Made by a program: the position numbers and the translations under genes. From positions 305,253 through 369,252 of the forward strand of contig NW_019218005.1 in NCBI RefSeq assembly GCF_002571385.2: a DNA stretch of 64,000 bases. The letters are read 5' to 3'. This document shows, piece by piece, positions 21,801 to 60,179 of the stretch (positions within the stretch are counted from its first letter, which is position 1; each line of letters begins with the position of its first letter). The notes under the pieces were generated by a model. The model ran no database searches and was not told the DNA's origin. It worked only from the letters and a program-made list of their open reading frames with translations. The stretch is from Stylophora pistillata. Taxonomy: Eukaryota.

Positions 21801-21810
21801 TGTATGTTAC

Positions 21811-33049: not shown

Positions 33050-33103
33050 CTACGGACGTTTATTTTGGTTACATTCCCTGTTGTGTGTTCCCCACGCGGA
33101 GAG
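33050..33103 (-). CDS. Tudor-PHD-MYND protein, exon 6 (completes the MYND finger, not in the ORF track)
   Basis: ttgcag|CTC TCC GCG TGG... = LSAWGTHNRECNQNKRP*, which supplies the W..H...C end of the MYND motif in phase 0. Confidence 0.88.
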   Translation of the reverse strand, partial: LSAWGTHNRECNQNKRP

Positions 33104-33159
33104 CTGCAAGTTTAAAAATATTATTTTTCATAAGCTAACTGCATGCCACTATTCTATTT

Positions 33160-33420
33160 TATAAGATAAGCTGAATTATACGCGCTTCTTGATTGGTTCT
33201 TCCTTCTTACTCTGGAGGACAGAGGCATAAAGGACGACATAATTCAGAGCATTTTGCTCCTTCATCATAAAGCTATAATAGGTCGTTTGTCTATACAGTA
33301 ACAGATTACAGTAAACGTCAAAACGAGGTAAGATTACAGTAAACGTCAAAACGAGGTAAGAACATCAGTCTTATGGGATCTATTACTGCGCAGACGCGCG
33401 GCAATATGGAATTTATTTGT
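33160..33420. repeat. Interspersed repeat related to ~520-685, with an internal 28-bp tandem duplication (33303-33358)
   Basis: Shares gtcaaa..ggtaaga and gatc.attactg..cagac motifs with 520-685. agattacagtaaacgtcaaaacgaggta occurs twice. Confidence 0.55.
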
Positions 33421-33638
33421 TAATTAGATCAATAATGCAAACACTAAAATTTTGGGTTGAATAACATTACTCAGTAAGAAAGGAAGATGTTCCTTACAAC
33501 AGGCGAACCTCAGACCTTCCGGAATCTGGAACGATTCTAATGAATTGCTTTTTGGAAAATGTATTACTAATTATATTGCGAAGAGAACCAACACGCTAAT
33601 TTTGATACTAAAATCAAAGGCGTGATTAGCTTTCTTAC

Positions 33639-34493
33639 CTGACACTCTGAGCTGCAGTACCAAGCCGCCTGACAGCCAGAACACAGGAACGACGCTTCAC
33701 GCTTGCACACTGAGCAGCGGTTAACTCCATCATGTTCCGCCTTCCCGGTGCCTTTATTTTCCTCCCGTTGAGATGTCAGGGGACCTGCCTTGGAGGCCAT
33801 GAGCCCCTGTAAAGGAGCATTCATGTGCGCTTCAGCTCTTTTACGATCAATAACTGCTTGACTAGGTCTCACTGCTTGGTCACGATTGCGATGCCACAGA
33901 GAATCCCGTTCAAACATCGCACTGTTTGCCGCTTTTCTCAAATGTTCATTTTCCAGAGGACGACTGACTCTGACGTCACCAGCTTCACTCAGTTTGTCTC
34001 TTACTTGAGAAGAGTTCCCTATAAGGTTTTTGGGACTCGCGATCTCAGGTCGGTCTTTCCTTTCAAGATTAAGCACATTTGCACTGGAGCTCAAGTGCTT
34101 GGAATGTTGAGCGGACGGAGAAATTGAACGTTCCATGAGTTTCAGTCTTTTCACTCTCTCGTACTCCTCGCGATCCGATACGTGACTGAACTGTGGGGGA
34201 GAAGGATGCCGCATAATAATTCCACCTTGACAGTCGATTTCACTGAATCTTCGTTTTCTCTCCTCTGCGATTCTTTCCATGAAGAGAAGGCGTTCGTGAT
34301 CTGTGATTCGTTTCTCACGCGCTCTCATTGCGTCCAAGTGATCTCGCTTTTGTTCCATTCTCAGTTGATGTTCTTTGCTGAACACAAGAGGGTTAACTTT
34401 GTCTTTGAGCTCTGCATGAAGAAGTCTTCTGTTGGCCTCGATTTGCTCCAGACTCAGTCGTTGTCTTTCCCGCTCTCTCTCGCGTTCAATGTC
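33639..34493 (-). CDS. Tudor-PHD-MYND protein, exon 5 (R/E-rich coiled coil and MYND first part)
   Basis: tgatag|GAC ATT GAA...|gtaaga, 855 nt, phase 0/0. Ends CSVCKREASFLCSGCQAAWYCSSECQ. Confidence 0.88.
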
Positions 34494-34831: not shown

Positions 34832-37800
34832 CTGTCTGATGTGAGGTGGCACATTCTTACCAACCTCTGCTAAGAGACCCGCAGGCTTCCCAGCTGCAGC
34901 AGCCAGACGTTCCATGGCTTGACGTGAGTTCATCACGAGACCATATTCCCGAGAAACAAGGGAACTGGGTGGGGAATACATGTGAATATCGGAGGGCAAT
35001 CGAATGGATTCGGGCCCCCGTCGCTCCAACGAACCATCTGGTCGGACAAAAACGGACTTTGCACTCTGGGATCCGCCCTTACTCATAGGCAAGGATGAAG
35101 CCATCCGACTGAGAAGCTCGCGATGAGACGTTTCCGACCCTCTGACTGCTTCACCACGCCTATGCATCTCTAACTCATGTAGAGCTGCCATCCGGGGATC
35201 CACTCTAGGGTCCATCCTTCCTTGGACAGAAGAAGACATCGGAAATGGTCTGTCTGGATAAGCTTTCTGACGGAGAGGAGGCGAGATATTAAATGGCATT
35301 CTCGACCTCTTCCCACTATCTCCAGCACGGAGTAGTAAGAGGTCTTCAGGGCGCTCTCGTTCGGAGACAGGTATCCTGGTGCCTTCTTTGTCTCTCAAAT
35401 CCATTCTTGGGTCTTTTTCTTTGAGTTGAAACAGCTCTAAATTTGTGCCTCTTGCCTTGAGCTCTCCTGATTGCTCTAAGCGGAGCCTGTGTTCCATTTC
35501 GGGACTGAGGCCTTCTCTTGCACGTTCTTCTTTATTACTAGTTTGTCTCACTTTTTCATCCAACAGTCGAAGGCCTGGGTTTGTGATGCTAGAATTGCCG
35601 TGCGAAGAATCGGCGTTTCGCTCTCTCTCCAGTCGACCAGCATGTTCTAAGATTTCTACATCTCGAGGGCTTGCTTCTTTGGCTGAATGCATCCTTAGCA
35701 ATGGTGACGAATATCCTCTACTCAACTCCTCACGCCTCTGCCTATCAGAGGACACTCTTACATCTGCTTCATCCAATGGTCGAAGACGTGGAGGTCCAGG
35801 CTTGATAAATTCACCCGTGATAGAGCCAGGCTTCCTTTCGTCTACTAGACGTCTCAATGAAACGGCCTGATCCCTCTTGTCTACTGGCGAAATGGAAGTC
35901 GAGCTCGGTCCCCGCCCGGGAGAGATTAAGGTAGAATCCTTTGAATGCGGAGGGGTTGTAAACTTGGCTGGTCCGCGGGAAGGAGAAGTGAGGCCAGAGA
36001 CAACAAGTTCCCCTGGATGCACCTTGACGCCTTCGTCAATCTTTATCCGTAACATTTCTTCTTCTCTTCTGCGATTTAGATCAGACAAAGTGAGAGGCTG
36101 ATGGAGGGGTCTCCGCTCGTACAGTGAGGTCATGTGAGGTACCACGCGTTCCCTGGGAGATCTTTCAGGTGACTTCTGGAGTTGATGGGGAGAAAGCAAG
36201 TGATCGCTTCCGAAGCGGCGGACTTTATCGTCATGTAAAGTTTCAAGTTCTCTCAGACTTGCAGGGGAATGCTTCCCAATTTGCTGAAGATGGGACAGCA
36301 TCAGTGGAGGGCGCTTTCCTGGGACATGCGCAATGGGCTTTACCACTTTGGGTGTCTGGAGGTTTGCTTTGTCCCCTAGAGTGTCTCTATCGGGTGGGGA
36401 CTGCTTATCCGGCTGGTACGCCTGAAATTCTGGTTGTCGGCATTGGCTTTTGTCGCACTCACGACGATCACGTGACATAACTGCAGACAAATGGTCGTGG
36501 CTGTGAGGGCCAAAGGCGCGCACTGGGCCATGATGACCAGGAATGTCCAAGTGCATACCTCTAGGGCTGTTGCCATGGAAAGGGCAGTTCACGTCCCGCT
36601 TACAAGGTATTCCTGACTTCATGTTTCCGTGCATGTGGTGTCCACAGTTGGTTGCGGGGTATCGACCTGCCTGTGACAAAGGACCACCAAACATTCCAGG
36701 CCCAGGTATGGCTCCACTGTGGGTTAGAAGATGCGGTGTGAACGTTCTGGGTGAGTAACTCTTTAAATGGGGCGAGGTTGGACCGAGACCTGGTGAAATA
36801 GGCATGCCATTCCCATCATGCATCGGGACAACAGGAATCAAAATGGCGGCGCGATGGGGTGGCACGTGCATAGGGCGGCTGAATTTCTCCTTCATACTTC
36901 CAGGAATGGTAGGAGTCACAGCACCAAAAGGCTTCTTTAGCGAAGAGTAAGGCACTGCTTTATCAGGGGGAGAATTGCTTATTGATTTTGGAGGTGATTT
37001 GTGTCCTTCCTTTTGGCTTGAATCGTTATGTTTGGTGCTGGACTGCTCATAGCTTGATTTTGAGCTATGACTAACCTCTCGTGTTTCTTCCAGTCCACGT
37101 TTCTTTTTCTCATCATCATCGTCGAGAATCTCGATGGGGCTGATAACCTTACGCTGTTGCTCTGTTTCAGTCGAAGCTGGTTCGCTATTTCTTGGGGTCC
37201 CTGACGTCAATCCCTCTTTATCCTGGAGCGGTTCGTGGAAAACTTCTTTTTCAGGTACAATCTTTCGGAGCTTTGGTAAAGGCTCCAAACCAGAAGCTTC
37301 CTTAGACGGTAAGGTGTGTTTCAATGGAGGTGGGGGGGGCTTGTTATCCGTTGGTTTAAAACCACTTTCGTTTCCGCCGGTGGATTCAGGTGAGGATGGT
37401 TTAAGTCGAGGCAACGTTTTAGGTACATTTGGTGGAAATTTTCTTCGCAAGAAACTCTGACGAAGTTCATTTTGAAAGTCGTCCTTCGGTGAAGTTGTGG
37501 GATCTTCATGATCGCTGAGTTGTTTTGGAGAAAATGCGCTACGGTTTTCTGGTTTTTCGGGTTTTTCGGGCGATAACTGAACCGGCGACGTTCTCACGAT
37601 GTCTTTATCTACAGCGTTCTCGTTTTCTCCAGAAGGAGAGAGCTCGTTCTCTCTGATGATTTGGTTACCTTCGTTGCCTTGCTCCTCCTTTGCATCTTTT
37701 GCAGACTGCACAGTATCCTCAGCGCACAGTTTGTTCTGTTGCAGCAGCCGTTCCACAAGCCAGTTATGCCTCGGCAGATCACGTGCGTATCGGTTTTGAC

Positions 37801-40390
37801 TGATAAGATGAGGTGGAGTTGATCTTTCTCTATCTTTGTCTTTCTCGTCACTTTTTCTTTTGGTCTTTCCGATTCTTTTTTCCTTCCTTCCTATGTCTTT
37901 CCTTCCACTTGCCTCCACTGAACTTCTTTGTGAGTCTGAAAGGGCGCTCGCTTCATGAGCGCTATCGCAATTATCTGAACCAGCAGTCCCCACGCCAAAG
38001 ATTTCTTCTGAAGCGTCTGCGCTAAAGCGTTCTTCGTTCGGCGACAGCGATCGCCCATCGCTGCACCGTTTGTTATCATCATTTTCTTCAACCTGACAAC
38101 TTTCTTTGAAGCTGGCCGACTCGGTTTCGTTGTCCAGAGAGGGGTGGGTCGGGGAGCCTCCTGAGGTCATAAAGTCATCATCCATGTTTGGAGTCTCTCT
38201 CACAAGCCCTTTATCTTCCTCCGCTTGCACTGTTATTTGGCATGCATCTCTGTTTTTATTCTGTGATGCATCATCGTCGCTTTCTGAATCAACTTGTTTA
38301 ACGCTCTTACTCGTTGAAGCGTCTTTAACAGCAGAGCGAGCTTTCCCTCCTTTGGCTTTCCGCCGTGGTTTATGGGAAACTAGCTTATGCACGTTCTTGT
38401 TAGTTTTCGACTTCTTCCTTTTCTTCTTCTTTATTTTCCCGCGGGCCGGTGGGGTTAGATTTTCTGGTTCACTGAGCTCACCCGCATCCGACATACCCTC
38501 CACGTTTGAAAGTTCAGATTCGTTGGTAACATTCTCAGAGTTTTGTTCGGTACTGAACGAACCGTTCTGCTCCGTTTCTTTTTCTTGTTTCACAGAGCCT
38601 TCCATTTCCATGACTTCAGCGTTTTCATCTATGATTTGCTGATCAGAGGTTTCTGCCTTCTGAGCTAATTCTTCGCTGTTAAACTCGTTTTCATGCCATT
38701 CTTTTTCACTCGATTCATTCGACTTTGTAACATTTATTTCCGATGATCTCACGCGACCGATCCATGCATCAGTGTCGCCATTTTTTATGTCATTTTCATC
38801 GTCATTTTCATCGTCATTTTCATCGTCATTTTCATCGTCATTTTCGTTGAAAGCGCCACAGGAGGAAACTTCAAGAGTTTCGTTTTCCTCACAATCGTGA
38901 ACATTCTTAGTGGAATGCTCGCACTGCATATCGGGCTCCTCCATAAGGCGCGCAATTTTTGAACTTTTGATACTGCTGTGATCTGGGTCGTCAGGCGGTA
39001 GACATTCTATGTTGTCATATGCAAAGCTGCCATCAATAGCTTTGTCATCACAGTTCGAAGTTCCTCCTTCGCTTGAGCATTCCCAAGGCGCGTAGCCAAG
39101 ATTGTTGATTAAGTCAGTTTTCAATGGCGAATCTACCGAGTCGCGTTTTTCCTCTAAGCCGTTACATTTTATTTCAGACGTTGAATTTAATCCATTTTCG
39201 ACCGGGCTCGTGTTCTCCGCAAACGTTGGACTTCCGCCATTTGAGTTGAGTCCATTGGTAGAAACCTTTCTGTTTTCCAAAAGAGTTTCTTCCTTATCAG
39301 CATCACTGAAAGGTAGCTCGTCGTCATCAGAGACGTTTTCAAGCTGGAGTTCAAGCGTATTTCTAACTTCAGAGTTGGTGATGGTATCTGCCTCACACTG
39401 CCTCCCACCAGACGAAGAGTTTTCCAACAAGTTATTCTTGTAACGCAATCCTTTTACCTCAACTTTACTCTCATTCACAAACTCGATATTTTTCATTTCC
39501 TGCACAGGTCCTCTACGCAAGAATCTATCAAACAAAGACTCTCGCTCGCCTGAAAGTTTACAAACATCGTCGCTATCATGTTCACTATTGTACTCGGGGG
39601 AGTGGTCTCCGTAACACCGTTCATACATTCCATGATTGCAATCATTCTCTCCTTCGTTACAAATCTGATCGTGAATGTTTTCTGTCGAAGCTTTCTCGCC
39701 ATCCGTTTCAACGGCTGCTAATTCCGTTCCAACACTTTCTTTCCTGTTGTCAAATATATCTACAAATTTTTTGGTAAGTTGTTCACGTTGCAACAGTTCT
39801 GCCCGAGCAATATCTTCGCTTAATAATCTCTTCTGTCGTGCCAAATCCTGGGTTAGTCTTTGTTTTTCCCGCGGCGCATCGCGCCTGTGAGAAGATATCA
39901 CTTTGGCTGCTTTATTCTCCTCGGTTTGTTGGTATCGTTTGCTTCCCTGTTCTCTAGCCGGTGACAGTTTCCTTCCCTCAGAATCCTCCAGAAGCCTTAC
40001 ATTCCGTACAGGGGAACCATAACGTCCTGAATGCCGGGCGGGCAAGTCGTTACCATGTCTCTGGTAATGATGCGAGCTTTTCCGTTGCTGATTTGAGTCA
40101 AATTCAGAGTTTCTATCGGAATACTGGTCACGTTCCCGCACACCCGAGCGCGCGGCGGGTTTGCTGTTCCCTCGCGCGCGTTTATCCCCACCGGATGATT
40201 TGGACTTGTGACCGAACGTTGGCCTCCCTCGTACCTTCGCTCCTTCGCGTGGATGCATGTGCGAGGAAAAGTAATAGCTCGACATCCCGCGCGAGACCAC
40301 CTCGCTTGCCTTAATACTCTCCCTTGCGGGCAAATCTTTCTCGTCTTCTGTTGAATTTCCTGAGCTCACGCACGATTCTCCGGACTTAAG
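34832..40390 (-). CDS. Tudor-PHD-MYND protein, exon 4 (5559 nt, low complexity)
   Basis: Open frame of 1853 codons between ttacag| and |gtgagt. Contains an acidic region with (DDEN)n, a basic KIKKKKRKKSK NLS-like tract, and Pro/His-rich and R/E-rich regions. Confidence 0.9.
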
Positions 40391-43300
40391 CTGTAAAAAA
40401 ATTAAAGAAAACCACTCAGACTGTATTTCCATTTAGTACGAAATATTTATCTGTTGCGCCTAGTTACTGCTGAGTCACTTCCCGACGACTCACAGTTAGT
40501 CAGTCTTAAACACAAAGTTTTTACCTGACTTAGCGTGCTGTGATGAAAGAAATTTCGGGCAAACAACATGTTACTGCTGCCTAACCGGTCAAAATCTTGT
40601 TAAAAACAGCCACAAAATCTCGCCCTTACAAGATTTAAAGACTAATCTTCCCACAGCCATAAGATACCGAAAAGCTCTGCCGAGTGACACGACACAATGT
40701 TGTTTTTTAGATTAAGTATTATAATAGAAAACACAACTATTTAATTCACGACTGCCTCTATCAGTAATGGCAGCCTTCAATACCCAGTTTGTGCCCTCGA
40801 TCAATATCACTATCAAGTGCCACTTGAGATGCCGTATTATCAATATCACGTTTCTTGTTTCAGGAATATACCGATATCAAGCTACTGGCGCCGTTAAATA
40901 AAACGAAGAAACTCCAAACACCACAAACTGGTTCACAACTGTATTACCTTAAACGCGGTCAATTTACCACAACAGCAGCAAATCCTGCACAACGATATCC
41001 TGTTCTTGAATGGGTTCCATTTTATCAAACGCGCTTCGCTCAAGTCGACCATCAGGAAATGGCTATTTTTCGACCCACTATAGATTACTTACATTGCGTA
41101 AAAACACGCACTATCAGTGGGGCTTAATAGCGCAATACTTGCGTGTAGAACAAATACAGTAAGCGGATACCATCCACTTCAATTATTTATCAACAATACC
41201 GCAATATTCGGCAGCGTTTTCGCCTCAAGATCGGCCCGTGTTCATGTACTGATATACATTCAGTGGTAAATAACATATCCGGCTGGTATGCCGAGTCATA
41301 TTTGTTCAAATATAAGATGATTATCCTTCAGCTATTAGGACTACTTTTTCGTTTTGAGAGATGACGTGGAACAACAAGAGCGTCTTCCAGCGCGCTCTAG
41401 CGGAACATTAAACCATGGGTCAAACCTTTCAACAAACAATTACTGACAGTTTCTAACTAATCTATTTTTAAAACCTCTGTCATGGCATAACACAGGAGAG
41501 CAACAGCTAAAACCCGGCAACGACCAGCTTATGCAGAAAATAAACAAGAATCAGACAGATCAGACAAAAGCAAGCGATTGTGTTCTTGTCTAATCTTACG
41601 TAACATATTTCTATCCTTTGTTCCATCTATTGTTCTCGTAGCCAAGTGAACGTGACTCGCCCAGAACACGCTTAAGGGCTATTCAGCGAAAGCTACTAAA
41701 CTGAATCCATGAAAGTTGAAAGCACTCCAACACACAACACATCACGTACGGGGTCAAATGACCCTTCAACTTGTGTGTATAGTTGCCTTAAATAGACCTC
41801 CGCAGAGCAGAATCGTGGCGCCGCACATAACATATCATATATTGACCTTCTTCCGGGATGTATTGGCCTACTGAGCCGATCCTCTGGTTATAAATTATTC
41901 GCAAAGTAAAGTTGAATGCTAAGTGATTTAGCGACCGTCCTCCAAACACAAAGAGTTTAATTTGGTACCCCGCACGAACACGTTCAGCGAATCTACAGAG
42001 ATCCGTAAAAAGCATTCAAGGAACTTGGTATTAGCCACAATCAATACGATGTAATTCATCGGAGACTAAGTCTTAGGGAAGAAGCTCAAGTTTCCAGACT
42101 AAAGCAACCTTCGATATCTAGTTTTCCACCAGAAATCTAATCGCTTCAGTGTGTTATTTCGAATAATTTCGATTTCCTGTATACGGAATGTCCTCTGCGC
42201 TGATGCTTGCATTAGAATAATTCTTTCTTCCGTTTAAACAAAACAAGAACTCAACAGGCAGTCGCTTACAAAAAAAAAGCGATTCTTTCAAGGCAAGGAA
42301 ATTTCTGATCGAAATACTTATCTCCACAACTATGGGTAGAATGAAGAAATAATACCTTACTTTTTGTAGTTGTTTCAGGAAACTTTCAGACGAGTATCAG
42401 CCAGTCTGTGATTCACTCTCTTTTCTTCACTTTCTGTTCAACTCACTTTCTAATTCAGTCGCGACGTTTCGTGATTAGATGGGCGGCGATTTTAACTTCA
42501 CTAAGTGGCGGACCGATTGATCCAACATACTTTGGCAAAATTCGTCTAAGGATTAATTTTCACGACCGTCTAATGTCCACATCAAATATAATCCCTTTGA
42601 ACTAAAATTAACCTTCTTCAGAGCCCTCAGGCTAAAGGATTGTCAGCCCTCCAAAGCTACTTCAACTTTTCTTCTCAGAAAGTAATGCTATTGACGTAAT
42701 TCCTGCAGCATGCGTGATCCCGCGTTGACCACGCGTGGGCACGCACAATCACGTTTCTTTGGGAACACCTTTCTGTTTCACGAAGTCAATAACGAGAACT
42801 AACACAGTCGACAAACAAATAAATCAATACAAAAAGCGAATAAATAATGGATGGCCGACTGAATAAAAAAAGTAAATAAATAAACTTGTAAAATATTTAT
42901 GAAATGAATGAAACTGAGCCTTTGCAACACGACCAAGTATGCATCGACGCAACGAAAGACCATTGAAAAAATTAGAGCGATTTCAGCCAAAATTTAACTA
43001 AAAATTTTTCTAAAAAATTACAATATTTGACCAAAATACAAGCAATAAACCGAAAAAAAGTGTGGCCGGCATTTTCACATTGACAGCTCTAGGACAAAAA
43101 ATACAGTAATGGCCTACAGAGGCTCAACATACGATAAAAGTATACAGAGGCTCAACATCATTTCGTTACATTTGCTGGTAACTAACAACAAAGACATCAA
43201 GCTTATATCAGGCTGACTGTATTAATATTGGACCTCTGCTAAAGATTGTATAAGGATTTATTTATTTTTCTGGCCACAGTGGTTCTTATTTTCGCGATTC

Positions 43301-44636
43301 CGTCAAAACGGAACTGAGTTTTGATAAAATGTTTCTATTCGATGTATTGTACCAACAGAAGAAATTACGGATTATTGCGAAATGCTTTTGGTATAGTTCA
43401 CTTCGGCACGTTGGAACAGACTTATACCGAAGTGATATTACGGTGATATAATTCAGACCGCAAATTAAAAGGCCATTCAAAATATAAGAGGATTCACTAA
43501 TGAGGCCAAGTCGTTGAAATAAAAGTCAAGGATACCTGAAGAGTGATTTAAAATGGAACACACAACACAAGGCCGTGCTTATCAAACTCTGATGGTCGAA
43601 TGTACGTATTGATTGAATATCTTCACGGAAATATCGTTACTTAGCCCACGATTCGTCTCAAAATGTAAACATTGACTATCACAGAGATTAATAACTCAAC
43701 ATTTTATCAATGATAAAATCAAAAGAAAAAAGGCAAATACACAGATAACAAAATAAACTTCGCTGATCGACAGTCAAATTCGTATAAGAACTGTTGATAC
43801 AAATCCACGAGGACTGTAGAGAGAAAATCTGTGTTTACATTGGAGTCAGGTATGGTTGTCACATTTCTTGGCGTTGTGAAAACTTTTGTGCGCTTTTAGA
43901 AGCAACTTAACTGTGTTCCCATGGCACCGGTGGTAACATCTGCCTTACTGTTGATACAAAAACCGGAAACTAATTCCAAACAGTTTTCTTCCCTGAACGA
44001 AGCGTGAAGTGTTATGGCGTGTTCAGTTTGCCCTCTTATATCAGCGCGATGTTGAGTCGTTATGGAAGGCATTCCACCAAATTTGCTACAAAAGAGTAGA
44101 CGTAGCAACTGGGTGCTGGCTGTAAAGCAATTACTTTTAACTGTAATTTAGCATCTATCAAACGACCGCTATTTTGTTTTACATGTATTAGGGAGAGAAA
44201 GCAATGAAAAGCGAGAATTTCTTCATTGCTATCTGTTTTCCTTTTTTTTTTTTCTGACGATGTCGTCAAGAAACACTGAGGAGGAAATCTTACTTGCAGC
44301 CCGTAACAATTTACGTGTCGGTTACCATGGTGCCAATTCGCCACTGAGAAATTGACAGGATTTCAAACATGTTAGAAAAAAAACACGATAAATAAACAAC
44401 ATTAAAAAATAATCATAATCATAATAATAATAATAATAAATACAAAAATAAAAAAAAAATAAAAAAAAATTATCTTAGTATTGGGCCAATTGACACTTTT
44501 ATCGATTTATATTGATCATTTATATTTAAGTAGTATTAGATATTATTATAGTTAACAGTCCTGTCATGCAGATAGGTTACGAATTTTCGCCCTATCTTGC
44601 TTAGCTCACTAGCATCCAAACGTGTATACTGCATAA

Positions 44637-44680
44637 TAATAATGATAATAATAATAATAATAATAATAATGATAATAATA
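44637..44680. repeat. (AAT)n microsatellite
   Basis: Visible directly. A second tract lies at ~44410-44440. Confidence 0.85.
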
Positions 44681-44964
44681 AAGTTTATTAGGCATCCTTG
44701 CAACCTTAGGTGAAAATTTAACCTGCGCCAAGAAAGATAGGTATCTTTTGTGGGCTAGAAAGGCACTGTTTGTTTTTCTTCTATATAATATGATTCGCTA
44801 ACACATTTAATATCCGGCTGCGGGAACGAGTCTTTCGAAATCAATCAACTATACTAATCTTGCGACTGCGGAAAGTAAAACGAAATTATTGAAAACGAAC
44901 ATTGCAGCTAGTTACGTTAGGTAAATTAGCTGATTATTGCCACTATAAAGCATGATCGTTTTAC

Positions 44965-45131
44965 CGTGTGGATTCTGGTCTTTCTGACTCCTTTCCTAGC
45001 AGGTTTGGATTCAAATGGATTCTCCAGGTATGGACAAAATGCGCCGATTGAACAATACACGCACATCCAGGGCGCATCAAACTCTAAAGCTTCTGCTGGT
45101 ATAGCGGGGTGGTGGCACTCTTGATGGTAGC
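44965..45131 (-). CDS. Tudor-PHD-MYND protein, exon 3 (second half of the PHD finger, not in the ORF track)
   Basis: tttcag|GC TAC CAT... = GYHQECHHPAIPAEALEFDAPWMCVYCSIG...RIHT|gtaaaa. Phases 1/0 match exons 2 and 4. Confidence 0.88.
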
Positions 45132-48100: not shown

Positions 48101-51100
48101 ACACCGAAAGTGATCACTAAAGAACTTTAGGCCATTTAATGACCTGTGGGCTATAACAGGAATGAATGTTACATTACGAAATTTGTCATTTGTCATTAAT
48201 ATTATTAGAGTTAATATTATCGTTATTAATGACGATCACAAAAAAAATAACGAAAATGATTACCATCACTCTTATCTTATTTTTATCATTATTACTACTA
48301 TTGGCATTAAACGCTACCATCCTCAACGTTTCTTCTCTCCAAGACAAGAAAAAAAAAACCAAATTGTATTGTAGATTACGAAGAACCATGATTTTGGATT
48401 TCACGTTCGTTATCGTTCATTGTTTATTATTCAAAGCTCCGTGTGGGATGTATCTTTAGAGTCCCTTTTTGAAAGCTTTTATTGTGAAATCCTTCGCCAT
48501 TACATGCATGTATGCATTGGGTACACAACGCCAATAAACTGTCGGTCGCCGTAAATGTTTGGATAAATTTTGATTCGCAAAACTCGAGCTGCAACAGATC
48601 AAAGGTGACGTAAGGCAGGGCACTTTGGGCGACTAAACTGAAGAGAATTTCCCACAAAAAGAAACCCTAAGATTTTTCTGAAAACATAATGGAATGGAAC
48701 AAGCATGTTCCTTTCACATAGAGTTGAATTTATCCCGTAAGCGCCTCGGTCCTTTAGTTTGCGGCAACACAGCTGACTAAAACAAAACGTTTTATTCGAC
48801 CTAGCTTACGAAATGAAGCATATTGTGCAGTGACCTTCTTTAGTTACGAAAAAAAAGTCTGAGGGATTTCCTACTATTCTGAAAAATCTTCGGTGAAAAA
48901 GGAGTTTTTATTTTATTCCGGCCACCAAGAAAATTTGCCTGTTCTTACACTGGAAAGCGATCAAGATTTCCAAGAGGGAGATTTATTTATTCACAGAATT
49001 TATTTCATAAAAAATACAATTTCGGTGACATGCGGAGAAATGCAGGAGAGACAGCAAAACCCCAAGAGGGCAGAAAGAGGGGTTAAGGATAAAAAAGATG
49101 AAGACAGATTACAAACGAACCTAGAAAATTTAGCCTGGCTCCTTCAACTTTCTTTTTAAACAGACTAGTTGATTTGAAACCACCCGAAGAATAAAAACAA
49201 AATTAATTGCATTGAATTAACTCAACAGTGTCAGGCAATGCTTCTTGTTTCCAAACGGTTTGTGAGTTACGGCGAGTCCTTTAACGGTTCGGCCTACTGG
49301 AAAACATAGTTGGCTAGTTTCCCTACTTTGACGTCATGGTTAAACCAGCTCAACAAGCTTGACCCAATTGGTGTAGCAAGGTGAAGCACGTTTAACAAGT
49401 TTGACGTAATATTTCGGTCAAAAAAAAAAATTAAAACCTCTGACTAATCTGGTTAATATTCCCAGCTGGAAAGATATCTATTTAAGTCAGACGACGAGAG
49501 CTTTCTTTGTAAAGAATGGACTTTCTCCCTTCAGATCACAGAGATAATTTAGAAAGTACACGTGACCAAAACATTTTAATCAGCCTTTCCCCCCCCCTCT
49601 CATAACACAAAAGAAACGTACTCGAAGCGTTCGAGATCGAAAAGAAAAAAATGGTAAGTATATTTTTAAACACGCAAACTCTAATATCATTTGATTTCAA
49701 CAACCTTTTCACTGCTAAATCATTGTTTTTTTTTTTCTATTAGTACGTGATTGTATCTTAGTAACGCGCTAAGTTCCGTCGCTAGGTCCGTTGGGTAGCA
49801 ACACAATCCTCTCTCGTGGAATGTTGCTCACCTTGGTTGTTTTCTGATCACAAAGGGGTGCAAACAGATGACAAAAATATGCATTTCTTTGCCAATTTTG
49901 AACCTCATGCCCTACTGCGTTAATGCAGTGAAAATGGTTACTTAAAAAAAAAAAAAAAAAAAAAAAAAGGGGAGAGCTCCGTCTCCGAAACCAAAGAAAA
50001 AAAAATGAATATCAAAGCGATGTTCGCAGTAACAAACACTATGAGCGGTAGTGAAAATAAAGCCTGAAATTAATTCAGGCCTGTAAAATGTTCGCATTGG
50101 TTCCAAAAGTTAAGAGTCACAGCAAACATGTACCAGATAACAGCCATAATTGTATCAATTCGGAACCTCTTTCAAGGAGCGTGTGTCCACAAAGTTGATT
50201 AAGTTATCCACTGGCATGATTGTATAAGCCCAAGGAAATATCATCAGAACATGGTCTCTTGACACGCTACCCTGTTAAATCAAGTACAGCTATCGTGTAC
50301 AGAGCGGAAAGAGAGAGGAAAAAAACACAAACAAGATTGTTTGGGCTACAAATCGCGATCGTTATCGGAAAAAAAGCGTAAATGAGCTATCTTACTTAAG
50401 TTTATGCTTGGCCTGTAAAATGGCTGCTTGGCAAACACGTTCCCATGTTTAGTTTCTTGTTTACGACATGAATCGGTTTGGTAAGTATGTTTTCACTTGT
50501 CATTCCGGTTAATTTTTTTTGGCTAACCATCACCATTACCAAGTAGCTTGAAACATGAGGAAAGATTGCATTTAATTATACCATGTGCATTTACAACCTG
50601 CTTTTTACTGTCTGTCTGTTACTAGACATATTCGGCTGAAACTGTAACAAGGAGGGCAGGTATATTTTTAAAAACATCATCTACAGCAGCTAAAATATTT
50701 CCCACTTAAATGTAAATAAATAGAAGGAAGACCGTAAACGCATAACGCGAAAGTCGCAATCGTGAAGGCCTTTAGTTCAAAATCAAAACTAAAATTTTCA
50801 CATTTAAGCACTGTGTAAGAGTAATGGGTAGCTATGGACCAGTTAAAGGCACAAACCCTTGTCCATAAGATATTATTCTAACTGTCAAAAAAATGACCTG
50901 TTATAGCGATCGATAAGTCATTGTCAACATTCGCGTCACATGTTTGGCAACAAAACGGCATGGCGCTTATGCAAACATATCTGAGAAATTTGAGGAAGAT
51001 ATTGCTAATACACTTTGCTACCAAAAACGAAAAAGAAAATATCTGTGTGAAAACGCGCTTTCCTGCATTCTTAACCAAATGTATACGGTATACCTGATTT

Positions 51101-52614
51101 AGCGTTATTCTGGTCGAATCTATATGAAAATTTCCGATTCCTCTGCGACTTCGACAAGAAAACAGCCGAATTCAGTGCCGCTTTCTTTGCAAACAGCTAA
51201 CAACCTTGGAGTAAAGTATAAGCGTACAAAGCTAATAACTGCAAACATCTGAAAGCACTGCTTCAGATCCAGGAAGACCAACAAAACACGAATATTGTTG
51301 AACGAGAGCAACGCCGCCGATTAGAGAGATTTTCTAACGACACTCAATTTAAACAAAAACAAAACGACGAAAATAGGAAGGAAACTTTAGCCAACCTTTT
51401 GATTCAATGATTCGGCCAGAGTATGTGGGTCTTTGGTTAAATTGAACTGTAGTCGTTGTTTATCTGTGCAGCTGAGCCCCTCAAAGAAAACCACGACACT
51501 ATAGCAAACGTCTGTGTGAAAATAGTCTTCTTCTGGGTGAATAACCATGCCAACGGTACTGCTCCAAAAGAACTTTAATTCCCTTGAATGCGTGAGCACA
51601 AAGACAGTATCACGGTTATCGTGGTCTGTCTTTCACAAGGGGTGACTTTTGTTGAACAACGCGCGCGCTGGTCAGTTGACAACAAAATGAATAGCCAACG
51701 CGCTTAGTAGCAATAAGTTTCTTTGTGTTCCTCCTAGCACCACAAAAGGACAGGTTCACCGCGCGTCGTGCTTGTGTTTTGTCAAACAAAAGAACACAAC
51801 AGCTTTTCACCTGGCGAAAATCCTCAACACCGAGCCTTGAGACGTCATCCAGTGTACAAAGATGAAATCATTCAGTTACCGAAACTGTTTCATTCAACAG
51901 AGCAGTCGAAGGCAAATTAACCAGTGCAAAGAATCATTCTTAGTGTATGCAACCAAGTTTTTTTTCTTTTATAAAGCGTTCCTGTGAAAAGGGATCTGTA
52001 AACTTCCAGGTGCGATTAAGCGGGCTCCAAACTTTAGTCCTGTACAGTAAGAGAAAAAGCTTCTATATGGCGTCTTTTTCTCTGAGTGTCAAACCATCGT
52101 CCACTCAAAACCTTTCAAAATGCACTGCTCCTTTTACCCCCATTAAGAAGATTCTAGCCATAAAAACAAAATTGCCTTTGAACGTATTTCCATTACAGTC
52201 AATTAACAAGGGACATTTCCTCGTAATTCAATAATTCATGAACGCGATAAAAAGAAGGTCAAGTCTATGGTCAACGACCCTAACGCAACTAGCTTAAAAC
52301 TAAGTTTGCGTTGAGCCGTAATTTAAGCCTGTTCTCAGACGACGGACTTCATCCGAGACGGAAGGTTTACTGTTGAGTCAAACTAATTTTGCGACAGTGA
52401 GATTATAAAATAACCGACAGCGAGTTGACCCTTTGACGCATTTTCTGTTAAATTTCCGCCAGAATTTGGACCGCCAGTCGCACGACCCTCCCCTGTAAAC
52501 TATTCACAAGACTGGCTTGACTTACAACCATTTAAGGATGATAGACATAAGCGCTGAGTACCCTTCGTAGTAGTAGCTTCAAGTTAAAAAAGTAAGCGAT
52601 AGTGGCTTTGTTGC

Positions 52615-52920
52615 GTAGAAGGGAGGGGTGGTGGGGGGGATGGAGAGTACGCCAATCTTCCCCTTATCTCTCTTGAACACTTTCGCGCTACGGAACTTAA
52701 AGACTATCGCGTAGGTTTGCGAGAGATCTTTTCGGATACCAGATTCACCGTTTGTGGCGTGTTGAAATTTCGGTAGAAGGGAGGGGTGAGGGGGATGGAG
52801 AGTGCGCCAATCTTCCCCTCATCTCTCTTGAACACTTTCGCGCTACGGAACTTAAAGACTATCGCGTAGGTTTGCGAGAGATCTTTCCGGATACCAAATT
52901 CACCGTTTGTGGCGTGTTGA
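52615..52920. repeat. Tandem duplication, two units with a ~158-bp period
   Basis: gtagaagggagggg...tttgtggcgtgttga at 52615-52765 and 52773-52920, nearly identical. Confidence 0.9.
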
Positions 52921-54522
52921 GATTCGTCAGGTTTACACGAAAACATTTTTCCGATTCCTTCACATTAGATATCGATAAATCTTGTGGCACTTAAATTCCA
53001 CAAAAAAAAAAACTTAGAGAAATGATGCAAAGCACTTCATATATATTTCATGTGCAGCATCATATTTTGCGTTTTAAAAGTACTCGAAAACAACATTCAT
53101 ACTTTAAATTTCGAATTAAAAAAAACCGCCCAGGACGCGGATGAGCGAGGGTGCTGTTCGTTTAATGCGACACCAAAAACCTTTCCCGTAATGCAAAAGA
53201 AATGCAAAAGAAATCGCTGACAGAAGCATCACACGACCATTCGAGTGAGGGTGACTCTGAAGTCACTCAGTCACCACGCTAGTTCTCATAGCCTCGTCCT
53301 ACAAGCCACGATAAAGGTAATTTGAGGATAATTAGGGAAAAATACAAACACCTTGGCAGTATCTTCAGTATTTTCTTCCACGTGATGACTTTGTCAAGTT
53401 TAGGAAAATATGCATATGACGTCATATGGACTGATACATTTCTCGATATTAACTCAAACGCCGTAGTATTAAGGCGAGTATCAAAGTACTTTGATCCTGA
53501 ACATTTCAGTGTAAGATCTGTGGACATATGTTTGATACACGTCAAGTTTCAAATCTGGCAGAAACCTAAGATTTCTCCTTCTGACGTCATCAAAATTCTC
53601 TTACAGCAGAAATCAGACGCCGATAATTTAGCAGTAAAGACAGGTATCGTCGTCAATCTTCAGATTTTTGCCCTGTTCCCTTGATTTGCACATTTTATAC
53701 ATGGCAACATATGAAAGGTTACTTCAAACAACTTGACTACACATTCGCTAACACCGGGAAAAATCCTCTTCTTGCTTTTCTCAACAATACATGAAAAGAA
53801 ATGTTACGTTTAATTATGAATAACACGTGGTCACTGCAGGTGTCTATAAATTCTTAAAGACATTTAGTTTACTGTTTTTGTTAACCTTTCACACCTTGCT
53901 ATTGAACAGAAAGATTTGCATCCAAAATCTGCTCTTGGTCTAAAAATATAACATGGTCACCTAACAGGTATCACCTATGCTGCTCAACAGAACCAGTTTG
54001 AGAAACTTTGAATTATTTACGGCAATCTATTCATTTAAATGCTTATCAGCAACTTAAAAATCTTTGTTCCAAACCTGCAGTATGCTAAGAACAACTTGAA
54101 AACTTGCAAGAGTTTCAAATATATTGAGTAGTTATATCAATCAGACTAGAAAAACTGCATGTGTGTACAAAAGTGCGTCATGTATATATGACTTACTCTT
54201 TCACAGCTGGTTAGCTTAACTTTTAAACCATAATAGTGACCAACATCTAATTTCTCCTTACAGTAATAAGGCTGAATCATTCATCAAGATCGAGAGACTA
54301 AAGGAAATGATCGGCAACCCAAGAAGCTTTGATTGTTAAATAAACTCTCCTTGTCAGCACCACAGGAAATGTATAGAGAACAGTAAGGAGAAAATGGATA
54401 CTGATTTTAGGGTATGAAGGATTAATATCGTGGAGTAAATATGATCGTAATAAGGTTAAGGACCCTGAATGAGAAAGTAACAAATATACATGCCCACCCC
54501 TGTCTCTCTCCCCTCCCCTTCC

Positions 54523-55518
54523 NNNNNNNNNNNNNNNNNNNNNNNNNNNNNNNNNNNNNNNNNNNNNNNNNNNNNNNNNNNNNNNNNNNNNNNNNNNNNN
54601 NNNNNNNNNNNNNNNNNNNNNNNNNNNNNNNNNNNNNNNNNNNNNNNNNNNNNNNNNNNNNNNNNNNNNNNNNNNNNNNNNNNNNNNNNNNNNNNNNNNN
54701 NNNNNNNNNNNNNNNNNNNNNNNNNNNNNNNNNNNNNNNNNNNNNNNNNNNNNNNNNNNNNNNNNNNNNNNNNNNNNNNNNNNNNNNNNNNNNNNNNNNN
54801 NNNNNNNNNNNNNNNNNNNNNNNNNNNNNNNNNNNNNNNNNNNNNNNNNNNNNNNNNNNNNNNNNNNNNNNNNNNNNNNNNNNNNNNNNNNNNNNNNNNN
54901 NNNNNNNNNNNNNNNNNNNNNNNNNNNNNNNNNNNNNNNNNNNNNNNNNNNNNNNNNNNNNNNNNNNNNNNNNNNNNNNNNNNNNNNNNNNNNNNNNNNN
55001 NNNNNNNNNNNNNNNNNNNNNNNNNNNNNNNNNNNNNNNNNNNNNNNNNNNNNNNNNNNNNNNNNNNNNNNNNNNNNNNNNNNNNNNNNNNNNNNNNNNN
55101 NNNNNNNNNNNNNNNNNNNNNNNNNNNNNNNNNNNNNNNNNNNNNNNNNNNNNNNNNNNNNNNNNNNNNNNNNNNNNNNNNNNNNNNNNNNNNNNNNNNN
55201 NNNNNNNNNNNNNNNNNNNNNNNNNNNNNNNNNNNNNNNNNNNNNNNNNNNNNNNNNNNNNNNNNNNNNNNNNNNNNNNNNNNNNNNNNNNNNNNNNNNN
55301 NNNNNNNNNNNNNNNNNNNNNNNNNNNNNNNNNNNNNNNNNNNNNNNNNNNNNNNNNNNNNNNNNNNNNNNNNNNNNNNNNNNNNNNNNNNNNNNNNNNN
55401 NNNNNNNNNNNNNNNNNNNNNNNNNNNNNNNNNNNNNNNNNNNNNNNNNNNNNNNNNNNNNNNNNNNNNNNNNNNNNNNNNNNNNNNNNNNNNNNNNNNN
55501 NNNNNNNNNNNNNNNNNN
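54523..55518. other. Assembly gap flanked by C/T-rich low-complexity sequence
   Basis: N run with ccctccc-type flanks on both sides. Confidence 0.9.
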
Positions 55519-58500
55519 CCCCTCTCCCCCCTCCCCCCAGCTCTTTTGCATATTCATCCAGATGGACAAAAAATTTTGGTTATCATTTTTATGACTGTGA
55601 AGGACATCGGCCAGTAACTTGAGCATGCCAGTACGGTACAACACTAGCTGAAACCAGCACATGAACTTTCTCATAACACTGTCAGATGAAATATTACATG
55701 AATCCTTTCCTAACATCAGGTTTTTAGTTGACTCTAAAAAAGTACATCTTTTTTAATTAGAAGCTAACCTGAACTTACGGCTTCCAACTTTGAGGTGAAA
55801 ATACATTGAGAGTAACCAATCACAAGTTATCAAGGCTTGACATAAACATTTCCACCCAAGAAGTAGAATGTCATTCATAATCTCTTGAATTGTGCCTTAA
55901 ATATTAATCCATCGAATAAAAATCTCAATCAAATATTTAATGAAAGAAGACCACAAGATTTTATTCACAGACAAAAAAACAGCATAGCCAAACATAGTTC
56001 TAATATTTGTAATACAACTACATGTATATGCCCTTCAGCCTTAGTTGAGCTTTGACTAAAAATGGAGTAAGAGCACTTTATAAAAACCCATGCCATTTGG
56101 AGACAATTCTACTTCAATAACTTGTACTAAGATTGAATATTCGGACTTGTTTTCCTTGACCATCAGACAAAGCAAATATGTAAATATATTTTGATGTTTA
56201 TCAACTTCGACATGTGAACCCTGGACATAAGATATTTTGGAAAAATTAAACATCAAGAAAGACTTACATGACAGAGAAACTGAAACAGATGAAACCAATA
56301 ATCCTGTGATGAAAGTGTGATGTAGAAATGACATTGAAGAGATACATTGCAGAACTTTTCCATGTGCTGTTAAAATCAGACACTCACAAGACACACCTAG
56401 CACATGAGAGCCACAAACATCAACATGGTAGGGCACAAAATACAAAAGAGCCAACATAAGAAACTTCAGACTCCACCTTATGATGTGTGATGAAACATTG
56501 TAACAAAATCAAGTTTTATCCTGTTTGTTGCTTAAACACCCATGTGCTACAGAGATCTGCTCAGAGGGTCACAGTTCCTTGTAAAAACCAAAACAGACTA
56601 TTTAAGCCAGAGTCAGCTACTATCAAAAAACCCCAGAGGATGAAAATACAGCCAGTGTTTGGGCTCTTACTGTTTTGGTTCACTATAAATATTCAAGACT
56701 TTTACAGCACTTAAATTTTCAAGTGACCTTCTCAAATGACCAACAAAGCCCAAACATGACAATTAAAGGATGGAGAAAAAACAAATTGAGACAATAAATA
56801 TTCATCTAGGGGACAAGATGTCAATGAAATATGTAATCCTTAACACCCAACAGAAAGTGAATTTAGGATGCGTCCTTTACTCGGGAGAATTAATCAGAAA
56901 TTAGGTTCCTTATTGCTTGCGTAAAAAGGACATGTTAATCCATGCTGACACCTGCTGTCTGATTGATGAATCTTGTAAAAGCATTATGTTCCATAACAGT
57001 GGGAGAAACTACCAATCATATGTTACCATGATACTGTTCAGGTACTTAAATGTTAGTGCCTGCCTAGTTCACAAGCATGCAACACTTTTAAGAAAAGAAA
57101 TTATGGTAATTACACTAAAAACCTGGCACTACTGAAGTCAAAACACTTGGATGGCTTATAAACAGTGCACGCTTCAAGCAATTTTTTGCTCTGGCTCCAG
57201 AAGGTCTATGAGAATAAAGCTATTTTCAAATAACCTTTTCTAATATAGATACTCAGAAAAAAAATTAATTAAAGTTCAACTTAGCTTTCGTTCAAACTGA
57301 GAGTTCTTGGTGTGCTGAAGTTTTTTAATCCCTTGAAAAAGGAGTCAGAGCAATAGAAAAATGGCTTCAAGGTAGGTGAAGTAAATATTACAGAAGAGCT
57401 TGTTTAAGGGTGGTTTGCAACATCACTTGCAAAATAATAGCATTTTCTTTAATGACCTAGAAGAAACATGATACTTTGAGAAGTCATACTTAAGGAGAAA
57501 CTTCACGAAAGCAGTCAAAGTGACACAAGTGTTTGAAAACTGGTATCAAGTTAAGTACATCTGCTGGCTACATACAGTCCCTTTGAGTTTTTGAGCCTTT
57601 GAAGTATGCAGATAAAGAATACAGCACTTTAAAGGCCATATTTTTGTAACAAATTGATTTTTTTTCACAGCTGGTACATTAAAGTTCTTCACAGAACAGA
57701 AGAGGACTTAAAATAAAAAAAAATCCCACCCAAATAAAAGTAGCATTTGATGACAACTACTGGAAAAATTCTAAATTTACAACAATCCATACTAACATTA
57801 TCAGTCAAAATGTATGTGTTATGAAAACCTTTTTTCTACCTGTGGATATTTTTCATTTTGATTTATTTTCAGAACAGATATCTAAGTGCTAGGAACTATT
57901 GCCATAGTGGCTGGTTGCACTAACAAGAAAATTAACCAAAAATAGCTTATCAACATCATCACCTTTGGAGTGATAACAATTGAAAGTGAGAGCAATGGCT
58001 CTCCAGTTCAGAGAAGACCACCTCCCAATACTACAGAGTGAGAAAATGAACCTTTCTGTTGATAAAAATCTTGTTGAAAAACAGGCCAGTTGATCTGAAC
58101 TTTTTGCATAAATATCTCAACCCATCCCTGGATCCTATTAAAATATGTACAACAAAGTTAAAAAATAGAAAAACAGATGTTAAAATTGGCAAAAAGCTTG
58201 TTGAGTATTTAGTATGTAACAACCAAGAAGCTGCGATAAAATACGCTATACAAGACATGAGGCCTAGAGGTTCCAAACAAGTCGATGCATTTAGTTGGCA
58301 CTCAAAAATTAGATGTCTAAATAGTGCCCAAGGCTCTTTTCAGCGATTGTTAGAGACTTTGTACAGTTCCAAGAAAACAGAAGAACAACGATGAATCCAC
58401 AGAACAAGAGAAACTGTGCGCGATAAGTGCATAGCTAAAATATTGCTGAATACGGTATAATTACATCAAAAAGTTCAGATCCGCAAAGATTTTACAAAGA

Positions 58501-59665
58501 TCAATAAGAGTTAAACAAACACAAAGTTTGGTAAGTTTTTCTTAATACCGTTAAGAAAATACAAGGTTAAAATTCATTTTACTTTTCCTGAATCATATTT
58601 GCACTAACGATAAATAATTTCAAGATTCTGATCGAATAGTCGATCACTTCCGACGAAACTAAAACATTTGTTTATCATTCCAAGCTTTAATCTCTTTGCG
58701 CGCCAAGACTTTCAGATGACATTTGAGACAACCACAACATCCATTAGCGAAAACGAAATATAAATACTCTAAAACTAGTGTTTTAATCATCTGAGTAGGT
58801 GATGGACTACATCTGCCTAATAATGAATTCCACGGCTAGTGACAAGTTCAGTATTTCGAAGAAGCTTTCGCCCTAAAAACTGCTCCCGATGTTCAATTCA
58901 AAATGAAAGACATTCAAGTTTGTACATCGTGTCAGCTAGAATAACTCAGACATTTGGTTTCGAAGCAACAGTCGTTCACTTGAATTCTGTATGGAACGCT
59001 GACACTTTCCCTTGGTAACCATAATGAATAATCTGTTCTTTTGAACAACTTTGACTAAAACCACTTGCGAATCGACGTCAATATTCTTATTTTGGAAATC
59101 AATACAATCACATAAATAAAAGAAGACCTGTATCAATTTTTATCTCATCTGCTATTTTAATTTTATCAGAACATCAGTTCACCATTTTATTTCATTTATT
59201 TTTTCCTTTGCGAGGGAAAGGGAATAAATGTAGCTTTTATTTCTAACTGAACATCCCCTGTACTTGTGGCTACAATAATGCAGAAAAAAAGAATTGGCGA
59301 GTCATTATCAAGAAATGAAAACATTCACTTCTGTTTAGTCTGAATAATTTGTACCCTCAGATGACTTAGTTCGCTGAAAAGCGCTTCAACCAAGTAAAGA
59401 CTGGAAGATCAAGTTGTACTCTTTTGTGTTCTCATTGTTGAAACGAATCCACGTTGCACGGCGACCTGTCCTCTTCCTTCACAACAACAGAGCTTCCAGC
59501 AGCAGGTGGAATTTACGTGAAGTTTAATGGCCGTCCTTTCTTCACCACATAACACACATGTACGGACAAGAGAGCGATTAAAATACTGCGAAAGCTGACT
59601 TCCCTTCCGTTTCAGAGATGCGCTAACACAAAATAGAAAGTAGAATACACGGAAGAAGTACTTAC

Positions 59666-59761
59666 CGATTCCACACTTGTCACATAACACGATCTCGTTT
59701 GGTCTCAGCGAAGTTCCGTCTTTGCAAATAATACATACAATTTCTGCCGTCGTTTCTGTCA
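59666..59761 (-). CDS. Tudor-PHD-MYND protein, exon 2 (first half of a PCL-type PHD1)
   Basis: tcgcag|...|gtaagt. EIVCIICKDGTSLRPNEIVLCDKCGI(G) resembles PHD1 of MTF2/PHF1/PHF19. Confidence 0.88.
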
Positions 59762-60016
59762 CTGCGAGGAATCAGAGAGAAGTGTTAGCGAGGACAAAGA
59801 AATCCAATTACGCTTTTCCTACAACATTACGCGAAGGAAGTTTTATCAGGACAGAAAATAAAAACTCGCTAATTGCTTCCCACATGAAGACACCGAGAAC
59901 AAATCCGAGAACTCTGTGTGTCATACATGAAGAAACCTTGGCCGGATTCTATCGATATAAATGCTACATTCTCCTTGATTGAATAGAGAAATAAGAGTGC
60001 AAGAATTAAGACGAAC

Positions 60017-60179
60017 CACTGTGAATCTTGGAAAACGGACATTCCTCAACAGAATCATCGTCGAAGATTAGACTACACTTTCCAGAAACTCGGTCAATTT
60101 TCTGAATTTTCGCGTAAAACAGTTTGTCTTCCCATTCGGCCAACACGACATCTCCGTTTGAGAAGTTGAATTCATCCAT
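60017..60179 (-). CDS. Tudor-PHD-MYND protein, coding exon 1 (Polycomb-like-type Tudor domain, not in the ORF track)
   Basis: Encodes MDEFNFSNGDVVLAEWEDKLFYAKIQKIDRVSGKCSLIFDDDSVEECPFSKIHS, which matches the PCL Tudor pattern F..G.DVLA.W.D.LFY...I..I......C...F.D.S. Donor G|gttcgt is phase 1. Confidence 0.85.

Follow-up and report, generated by a model that had tools for sequence, protein, structure and literature searches.

The Polycomb-like (PCL) proteins, represented by Pcl in Drosophila and by PHF1, MTF2, and PHF19 in vertebrates, are the textbook link between H3K36 methylation, CpG DNA, and Polycomb repressive complex 2 (PRC2). We analyzed a stretch of 64,000 nucleotides (nt) from the scleractinian coral Stylophora pistillata (contig NW_019218005.1, positions 305,253 to 369,252; in the following, the window), in which a minus-strand gene at positions 33050-60179 encodes a protein that begins like a PCL protein and ends with a domain of a different type. 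The coral protein shares with PCL the homologous Tudor-PHD1 pair, the predicted fold of this pair, an acidic-serine loop, and two introns in phase 1. Unlike PCL, it has no PHD2, no winged helix (EH), and no Mtf2_C, it has a glutamate in the Tudor cage, it belongs to a separate clade, and a MYND finger together with about 2100 disordered residues takes the place of the missing domains.

The closest functional analogy is ZMYND11 (BS69), which reads H3.3K36me3 and represses, and which likewise combines a PHD finger and a Royal-family reader in its front part with a C-terminal MYND finger. The reader of ZMYND11 is, however, a bromo-PWWP module and not a Tudor domain, and ZMYND11 is compact. ETO and ZMYND10 give better alignments with the coral MYND finger than ZMYND8 does, and no homology is implied outside the PHD and MYND fingers. 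The MYND fingers of ETO/MTG (NHR4) and DEAF1 bind PPPL-type motifs of NCoR/SMRT and GATAD2A; the coral finger resembles them in all Cys/His ligands and in the aligned groove residues Q and W, but the coral protein has neither NHR1-3 nor a SAND domain.

What is new here is that the coral gene is not a lineage-specific oddity but belongs to a deeply conserved branch of the PCL family that has been overlooked and that has a different output domain. No published account of a Tudor-PHD-MYND architecture or of a cnidarian PCL was found in the searchable literature.

One expressed gene with alternative first exons

The original prediction comprised six exons (163, 96, 167, 5559, 855, and 54 nt) with canonical splice sites and matching phases that together encode 2297 amino acids (aa), and exactly this model was recovered on the minus strand at the positions given below. 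All internal boundaries conform to AG...GT, the introns are, in order along the gene, in phases 1, 1, 0, 0, and 0, and the codons split between exons 1 and 2 and between exons 2 and 3 specify V and G, respectively. The coding sequence has a total length of 6894 nt (2297 codons and the stop codon), and an in-frame stop is located nine codons 5' of the ATG. Exon 1 is present as a single copy in the coral genome. The closest database proteins come from stony corals and sea anemones, and the RNA runs in which the sequence occurs carry a coral label.

60017-60179, minus strand: exon 1, 163 nt; start codon and PCL-type Tudor; ends in phase 1
59666-59761, minus strand: exon 2, 96 nt, phase 1 to 1; Tudor-PHD linker and N-terminal half of PHD1
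45132-59665, minus strand: intron 2, 14.5 kb; holds the assembly gap 54523-55518
44965-45131, minus strand: exon 3, 167 nt; C-terminal half of PHD1 and a conserved post-PHD extension; ends in phase 0
42361-42765, minus strand: alternative exon A at the 5' end; joined to exon 4, non-coding, with in-frame stops and no ATG
40525-40569, minus strand: alternative first exon B, coding portion of 15 codons; joined to exon 4 in an isoform without Tudor-PHD
34832-40390, minus strand: exon 4, 5559 nt, 1853 aa; disordered, rich in S, E, R, and P, with short conserved blocks
33639-34493, minus strand: exon 5, 855 nt; conserved charged helical stretch, variable linker, and the first 26 MYND residues (from 33716 downward)
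33050-33103, minus strand: exon 6, 54 nt; end of the MYND finger (W, H, and final C) and stop codon

Both zinc fingers are completed only by splicing, as had been proposed: positions 1-20 of the Pfam PHD model lie in exon 2 and positions 23-47 in exon 3, and MYND positions 1-28 lie in exon 5 with the remainder in exon 6. The phase-0 intron between exons 5 and 6 falls directly behind the conserved CQ of the MYND finger, and the post-PHD extension of exon 3 finishes in an NPF motif. The run of N letters at 54523-55518 is entirely within intron 2 and touches no exon, and comparison with orthologues indicated that the PHD halves of exons 2 and 3 adjoin without a lost residue, so that the coding frame and its continuity are unaffected by the gap. 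The intron at the corresponding position in Nematostella is similarly long (16.3 kb), and no Pfam family was matched among the open reading frames inside intron 2. In all domain analyses, the exons were searched separately, and full-length orthologues served as contiguous stand-ins, namely the Nematostella protein (P0029) and the product (P0016) of a 7.6-kb transcript contig from another coral (L002), which encodes the complete architecture without interruption.

Read support in Stylophora was obtained for the junctions into exon 4, for which the reads of four RNA runs were aligned to positions 40000-45300. The junction 44965|40390 between exons 3 and 4, with GT..AG in gene orientation, was crossed by 10 reads with 7 distinct starts in one run and by 3 further reads in a second run, amounting to 13 in total, and the RNA depth was about 4 over exon 3 and 0 immediately upstream of 45131. 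The remaining four junctions are supported by canonical sites, phases, and exact colinearity with the orthologous transcript contig and with annotated orthologous genes. One could imagine that two genes, a small one with Tudor-PHD and a large one with MYND, had been merged in error, as intron 3 (4.6 kb) contains two alternative start exons and transcripts starting there do exist. However, the 13 reads that splice 44965 to 40390 refute a merger, and the orthologous transcript contig as well as several annotated orthologues carry both ends in one frame; we give this reading practically no credence. The join between exons 3 and 4, on which the original prediction had staked the unity of the gene, was found in RNA, and the locus represents a single gene of this scleractinian coral that is real and expressed.

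Transcripts from the alternative exons lack the head. The exon A junction (40390|42361) is contained in a 7933-nt poly(A) RNA contig with a depth of 140 and in 5 raw reads, and a transcript of this kind would begin translation at a conserved Met in exon 4 (40283-40285), without Tudor-PHD. The exon B junction (40390|40525) was found in 4 reads, and isoform X3 of Acropora (P0019) has a similar short starting peptide that is joined at the same residue. The Met at 40283-40285, which is the first in exon 4, is kept throughout the Tudor-PHD-MYND family, and N-terminally shorter isoforms are recorded at NCBI for Acropora, Oculina, and Corticium. At least two kinds of product are therefore to be distinguished, one with the Tudor-PHD head and one without it.

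These data bear on the alternative that the head-less isoform, a MYND-bearing disordered scaffold without histone reading, is the main product and that Tudor-PHD is a minor, possibly stage-specific addition. The use of exon A in the contig with a depth of 140, the depth of exon 3, which is only about 40% of that of exon 4, the conservation of the internal Met and of exon B in other corals, and the shorter isoforms at NCBI are all in line with it. In the raw reads, however, the exon 3 junction is the most frequent one (10 vs. 5 and 4), and no part of the protein is better conserved than the head, with 76% identity between acroporid and Nematostella sequences as opposed to about 40% in exon 4, which points to strong selection on the head. 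We regard a predominantly head-less product as unlikely. Separately, RNA reads of both strands with numerous variant letters cover a repeat in intron 3 (44425-44778), which is probably not a part of the gene but a dispersed element transcribed from elsewhere.

Tudor-PHD head, disordered middle, and MYND finger

The protein has a PCL-type Tudor at its N-terminus and PHD1 directly behind it. With exon 1 alone, Pfam gave a weak Tudor_2 match; with the uninterrupted orthologues, only Tudor_2, PHD, and MYND appeared, and PHD and zf-MYND passed the cut-offs. Using HMMER, the first 114 residues of an orthologue, comprising Tudor and PHD1, matched MTF2 (5xfr) with E=1e-24 and PHF1 with E=2e-12. An AlphaFold model of the head (pLDDT 83) had the N-terminal cassettes of MTF2 and PHF1 as its top matches in the PDB, and the modeled Tudor was within about 0.9 Å of PHF1 Tudor structures, H3K36me3-bound ones included, with an uncertain relative orientation of Tudor and PHD in this model. 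Look-alikes in the ESM Atlas reached a best score of 0.76 and were uninformative. In the alignment to PHF1, the cage positions are occupied by W, Y, and F with E at the fourth, just as had been read from the sequence at the outset, and the acidic-serine loop behind the cage F is retained.

PHD2, winged helix, SAND, NHR1, bromo, and PWWP domains had not been seen in the original prediction, and Pfam analyses of the exons and the orthologues agreed with this. PHD2 and winged helix were detected neither in exon 4 nor in the full-length orthologues, and the Mtf2_C domain, which binds PRC2/SUZ12, was not found by Pfam in the exons or in the full-length orthologues. A profile of canonical PCLs matched the Stylophora gene only at Tudor and PHD1 (profile positions 43-157). 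The proposed architecture was confirmed: a PCL-type Tudor followed by PHD1, an extended disordered middle, and a MYND finger at the C-terminus.

The middle of about 2100 residues is predicted to be disordered and has a composition of 12% S, 10% E, 8% R, and 8% P. No Pfam family matched exon 4 (1853 aa), and thirty homologues of this exon were found from hexacorals. About a dozen blocks of the middle region are 80-95% identical across hexacorals. The following features of exon 4 were located:

39785-39883, 37733-37825, 36812-36859, 36560-36646, 36281-36352, and 36065-36097, minus strand: blocks conserved among hexacorals
38402-38440, minus strand: lysine-rich run resembling a nuclear localization signal

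The region had originally been called low-complexity; this label is too weak for about a dozen sharply conserved short blocks, and "disordered with conserved docking motifs" fits the middle better. The block at 37733-37825 is also recognizable in Hydractinia and is common to cnidarians only, and the sponge members lack most of the hexacoral motifs. In the best conserved 301 residues of exon 4, no folded domain was found (AlphaFold model of residues 1160-1460, mean pLDDT 52, one helix). The cluster of Cys and His residues at 36560-36646 (minus strand; C..HH...C-5-C-2-H) is invariant in all hexacoral orthologues and could be a small zinc knuckle, with an AlphaFold pLDDT of about 55 in this part.

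The MYND domain is a C4-C2HC finger. Exon 5 alone scored 25.2 bits with zf-MYND (cut-off 22.7), and the orthologue scored 35.9 bits. All zinc ligands align with those of ETO and ETO2 NHR4, ZMYND10, and DEAF1, as do the residues Q and W, which line the peptide groove in the structures of ETO and BS69. The companion domains NHR1-3, SAND, and bromo-PWWP were not detected by Pfam in the exons or in the full-length orthologues. Two conserved internal blocks resemble PPxL-type MYND ligands and are limited to hexacorals. A complex prediction of the MYND finger with an internal PPL-type block (orthologue residues 1405-1450) gave a score of 0.02, which counts neither way. Binding of the MYND finger to an internal PPPL or PxLxP-like stretch of its own protein was considered and is given little weight, as these stretches are poorly conserved or restricted to hexacorals.

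Family members in three phyla and their relationship to PCL

An exhaustive search with the head (141 aa) yielded 892 matches, only four of which were below 1e-30, each of them at the N-terminus of a long protein. The full Tudor/PHD...MYND architecture is found in Nematostella, in the hydrozoan Hydractinia, in the homoscleromorph sponge Corticium, and in the calcareous sponge Sycon. Pfam identified PHD and MYND in the Corticium, Hydractinia, and Sycon proteins, and in Corticium also the Tudor above the cut-off. The same head, with a tail that is truncated or garbled in the gene model, occurs in Oscarella, Sanderia (Scyphozoa), and Trichoplax, and the end of the Trichoplax model resembles the last third of a MYND finger. 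The family has members in three phyla with orthologues of 912-2250 aa, which have in common the head, a conserved linker, and the post-PHD NPF extension, and no protein of the Tudor-PHD-MYND type was found in bilaterians.

It had been suspected that the protein might already be annotated as uncharacterized, and this is true, for example, for Nematostella LOC5516107, Acropora LOC114952686, and Oculina LOC144647353. Further database orthologues are Hydractinia LOC130621137, Corticium LOC134183524, Sycon LOC135819577, and "MTF2" of Trichoplax sp. H2, the labels in use being "uncharacterized", "MTF2", or "mucin-2-like". Some annotations are faulty: the Trichoplax sp. H2 orthologue (P0031) is called MTF2 and its MYND exon is garbled, a Corticium isoform (P0042) is labeled mucin-2-like, and a Strigamia PCL model (P0038) is fused to the TYW3 methyltransferase.

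In a tree of Tudor-PHD1 sequences, a comparison with PCL that the original prediction had called for, the MYND-type sequences formed a clade of their own with a support of 92/93 and in 94% of the bootstrap trees; with one extra relative included, the support was 97/86. The head is homologous to PCL and yet separate from it, as all PCLs that bear Mtf2_C, and likewise the sponge canonical PCL, fall opposite the MYND-type clade. The named members on the PCL side are all bilaterian with the one exception of Sycon, which has a canonical PCL besides its MYND-type gene. This Sycon PCL matches chordate MTF2 (fish, tunicate, and hagfish), and the matches cover 63-94% of the Tudor-PHD1-PHD2-winged helix part. 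As Sycon has both types, the duplication took place before sponges and the other animals separated. Closest to the MYND-type clade as an outgroup is a 177-aa Tudor-PHD protein from an ENA contig (P0151), which might mark a further lineage with the Tudor-PHD cassette.

For a comparison of gene structures, proteins were mapped back onto their own genomic loci. The head exons of Nematostella are 163, 96, and 167 nt long, identical to those of Stylophora, and a counterpart of exon 2 with the same size and phases is present in Nematostella, Hydractinia, and Corticium, while it has 93 nt in the canonical PCL genes of Lingula and Sycon. The phase-1 intron behind the Tudor and the phase-1 intron inside PHD1, just before GYHQ, occur in the MYND-type genes of the coral, Nematostella, Hydractinia, Corticium, and Sycon, and the proposed intron comparison with PCL genes showed that the canonical PCL of Lingula and that of Sycon have both of them too. 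All five MYND-type genes further have the phase-0 intron behind the CQ of the MYND finger. The genes of the family are therefore characterized by introns of phases 1, 1, and 0 at the head, by a single giant exon, and by a phase-0 intron that splits the MYND finger. The common positions and phases speak for a shared origin from a single ancestral gene and against recent shuffling.

The description of the gene as lineage-specific and exon-shuffled, with which the original prediction had ended, did not survive this comparison. A recent, coral-specific origin by exon shuffling would have agreed with the absence of the domain combination from well-studied bilaterian proteomes and with the symmetric phases of the exons that carry the zinc-finger halves. 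It is, however, refuted by the hydrozoan and sponge orthologues, which have the same domain order, intron positions, and phases, and the identical exon sizes of Nematostella and the occurrence of members in three phyla are likewise at odds with it, so that we consider shuffling of this kind highly improbable. By tree topology and gene structure, the gene is shown to be a member of an old, unnamed animal family that is the sister lineage of PCL, with a head that is a PCL paralogue. On the same grounds, the family dates to the base of the animals, where an ancestral PCL-like gene duplicated before the sponges split off.

Other parts of the window contain unrelated features. Two very similar sets of ABC-transporter exons (ABC_tran and ABCC-like membrane parts) are at 1062-2774 and 6529-8109 on the minus strand, with pieces up to about 10358; they look like a tandem duplicate or an assembly duplicate, and N gaps at 3578-4420 and 4486-4618 lie between them. 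A retroelement remnant with a reverse-transcriptase open reading frame (RVT_1, E=9e-6) and flanking open reading frames is found at 10931-13503 (minus strand). A PP2C-type protein phosphatase gene has exons at 19416-19922 and 21383-21928 (minus strand; PF00481, with E=2.5e-11 in the case of the distal exon), and a low-complexity open reading frame of repeated short Cys-Ser-Thr-Val-Pro-Leu-Phe units is at 30736-31328 (minus strand).

Canonical PCL genes and proposed function

As the original prediction had advised, we also examined whether a separate canonical PCL gene exists in the coral genome. PF14061 (Mtf2_C) had no match in the 398-Mb assembly. A profile of 16 canonical PCLs recovered exons 2, 3, and 1 of the gene itself (E 1e-8 to 9e-4), which served as a positive control, and detected no PHD2, winged-helix, or Mtf2_C exons in the coral genome but only unrelated PHD fingers elsewhere; as these parts are very small exons in other animals, such an exon-by-exon search could miss them. 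Hence, a separate canonical PCL gene was not found with this profile, but its absence is not proven. None of the approximately 30 canonical PCL matches with names is cnidarian. A search of the coral genome with a single Owenia PCL had no power, as it did not even recover the gene's own exons, and a word search that started from the sponge canonical PCL yielded exclusively MTF2/PHF1 of chordates (fish, tunicate, and hagfish) and was uninformative on cnidarians. Elsewhere in the genome, an open frame of 506 aa (L005:901-2421) has a PHD finger corresponding to PHD1 positions of PCL (E=5e-5), with no Tudor in the match.

The apparent lack of a canonical PCL in the profile search, in the search for Mtf2_C, and among the named matches is what would be expected from the main alternative, in which the protein is a working cnidarian PCL subunit that, after loss of the canonical PCL, targets PRC2 via an unrecognized contact in the disordered region. 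A Hydra preprint that lists "Pcl" among stem-cell factors with lineage-specific splice variants, which may be a member of the MYND-type family, can be added on this side. However, the SUZ12-binding Mtf2_C and the CpG-binding winged helix are absent from the protein, its clade is separate and coexists with a canonical PCL in Sycon, and small PHD2 and winged-helix exons of a canonical gene may have been overlooked in the exon-by-exon search. We consider a PRC2 subunit of this kind improbable.

The explanation that we favor overall, with moderate confidence, is that of an expressed gene of the sister-PCL family whose product is a chromatin-reader scaffold that recruits partners via its MYND finger; a role as a chromatin-reader scaffold without a known PRC2-binding domain is in itself likely. 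The Tudor would read methyl-lysine of the H3K36me type and PHD1 would contact the H3 tail, so that the head would dock the protein on histone H3. The MYND finger would bind proline-leucine motifs in partners such as NCoR/SMRT-HDAC3 or NuRD-type corepressors, and the disordered middle would supply additional docking motifs. Because PHD2, the winged helix, and the PRC2-binding C-terminal domain are absent, this coupling would bypass the known PCL-PRC2 interface. The originally proposed combination of H3K36me3 reading with PRC2-independent recruitment of corepressors is plausible. Internal promoters yield head-less isoforms that would keep the partner-binding parts and lose chromatin reading, which may be a way to tune or oppose the long form.

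Some observations weigh against a chromatin-reader scaffold. The fourth cage position is occupied by the non-aromatic E, Hydractinia and Trichoplax have C in place of the cage W, and the Sycon cage is degenerate, so that methyl-lysine reading may be weak, altered, or not conserved. The dominant assembled transcript of one poly(A) run uses exon A and lacks the head, and the reader-bearing long form may thus be in the minority. In addition, it is possible that PRC2 is contacted via an unrecognized motif in the disordered region.

If the proposed role is true, a sister lineage that has the same reader but a MYND finger in place of the PRC2 anchor would mean that one reader module was given two outputs at the base of the animals. 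A more far-reaching scenario, which we put forward only tentatively and with more doubt than confidence, is that the two early-animal PCL lineages were lost reciprocally: bilaterians would have kept the PRC2-binding type and cnidarians, perhaps also placozoans, only the MYND type, and in these animals H3K36-methyl reading of the PCL kind would act through a deacetylase corepressor recruited by MYND and not through PRC2, while the choice of promoter would turn the reader on or off. For the databases, the family means that the names MTF2 and mucin-2-like have been given wrongly to several orthologues. Both Nematostella and Hydractinia can be manipulated genetically, which makes the question directly testable. 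If corals and sea anemones truly lack a canonical PCL, Polycomb targeting in cnidarians would need to be rethought.

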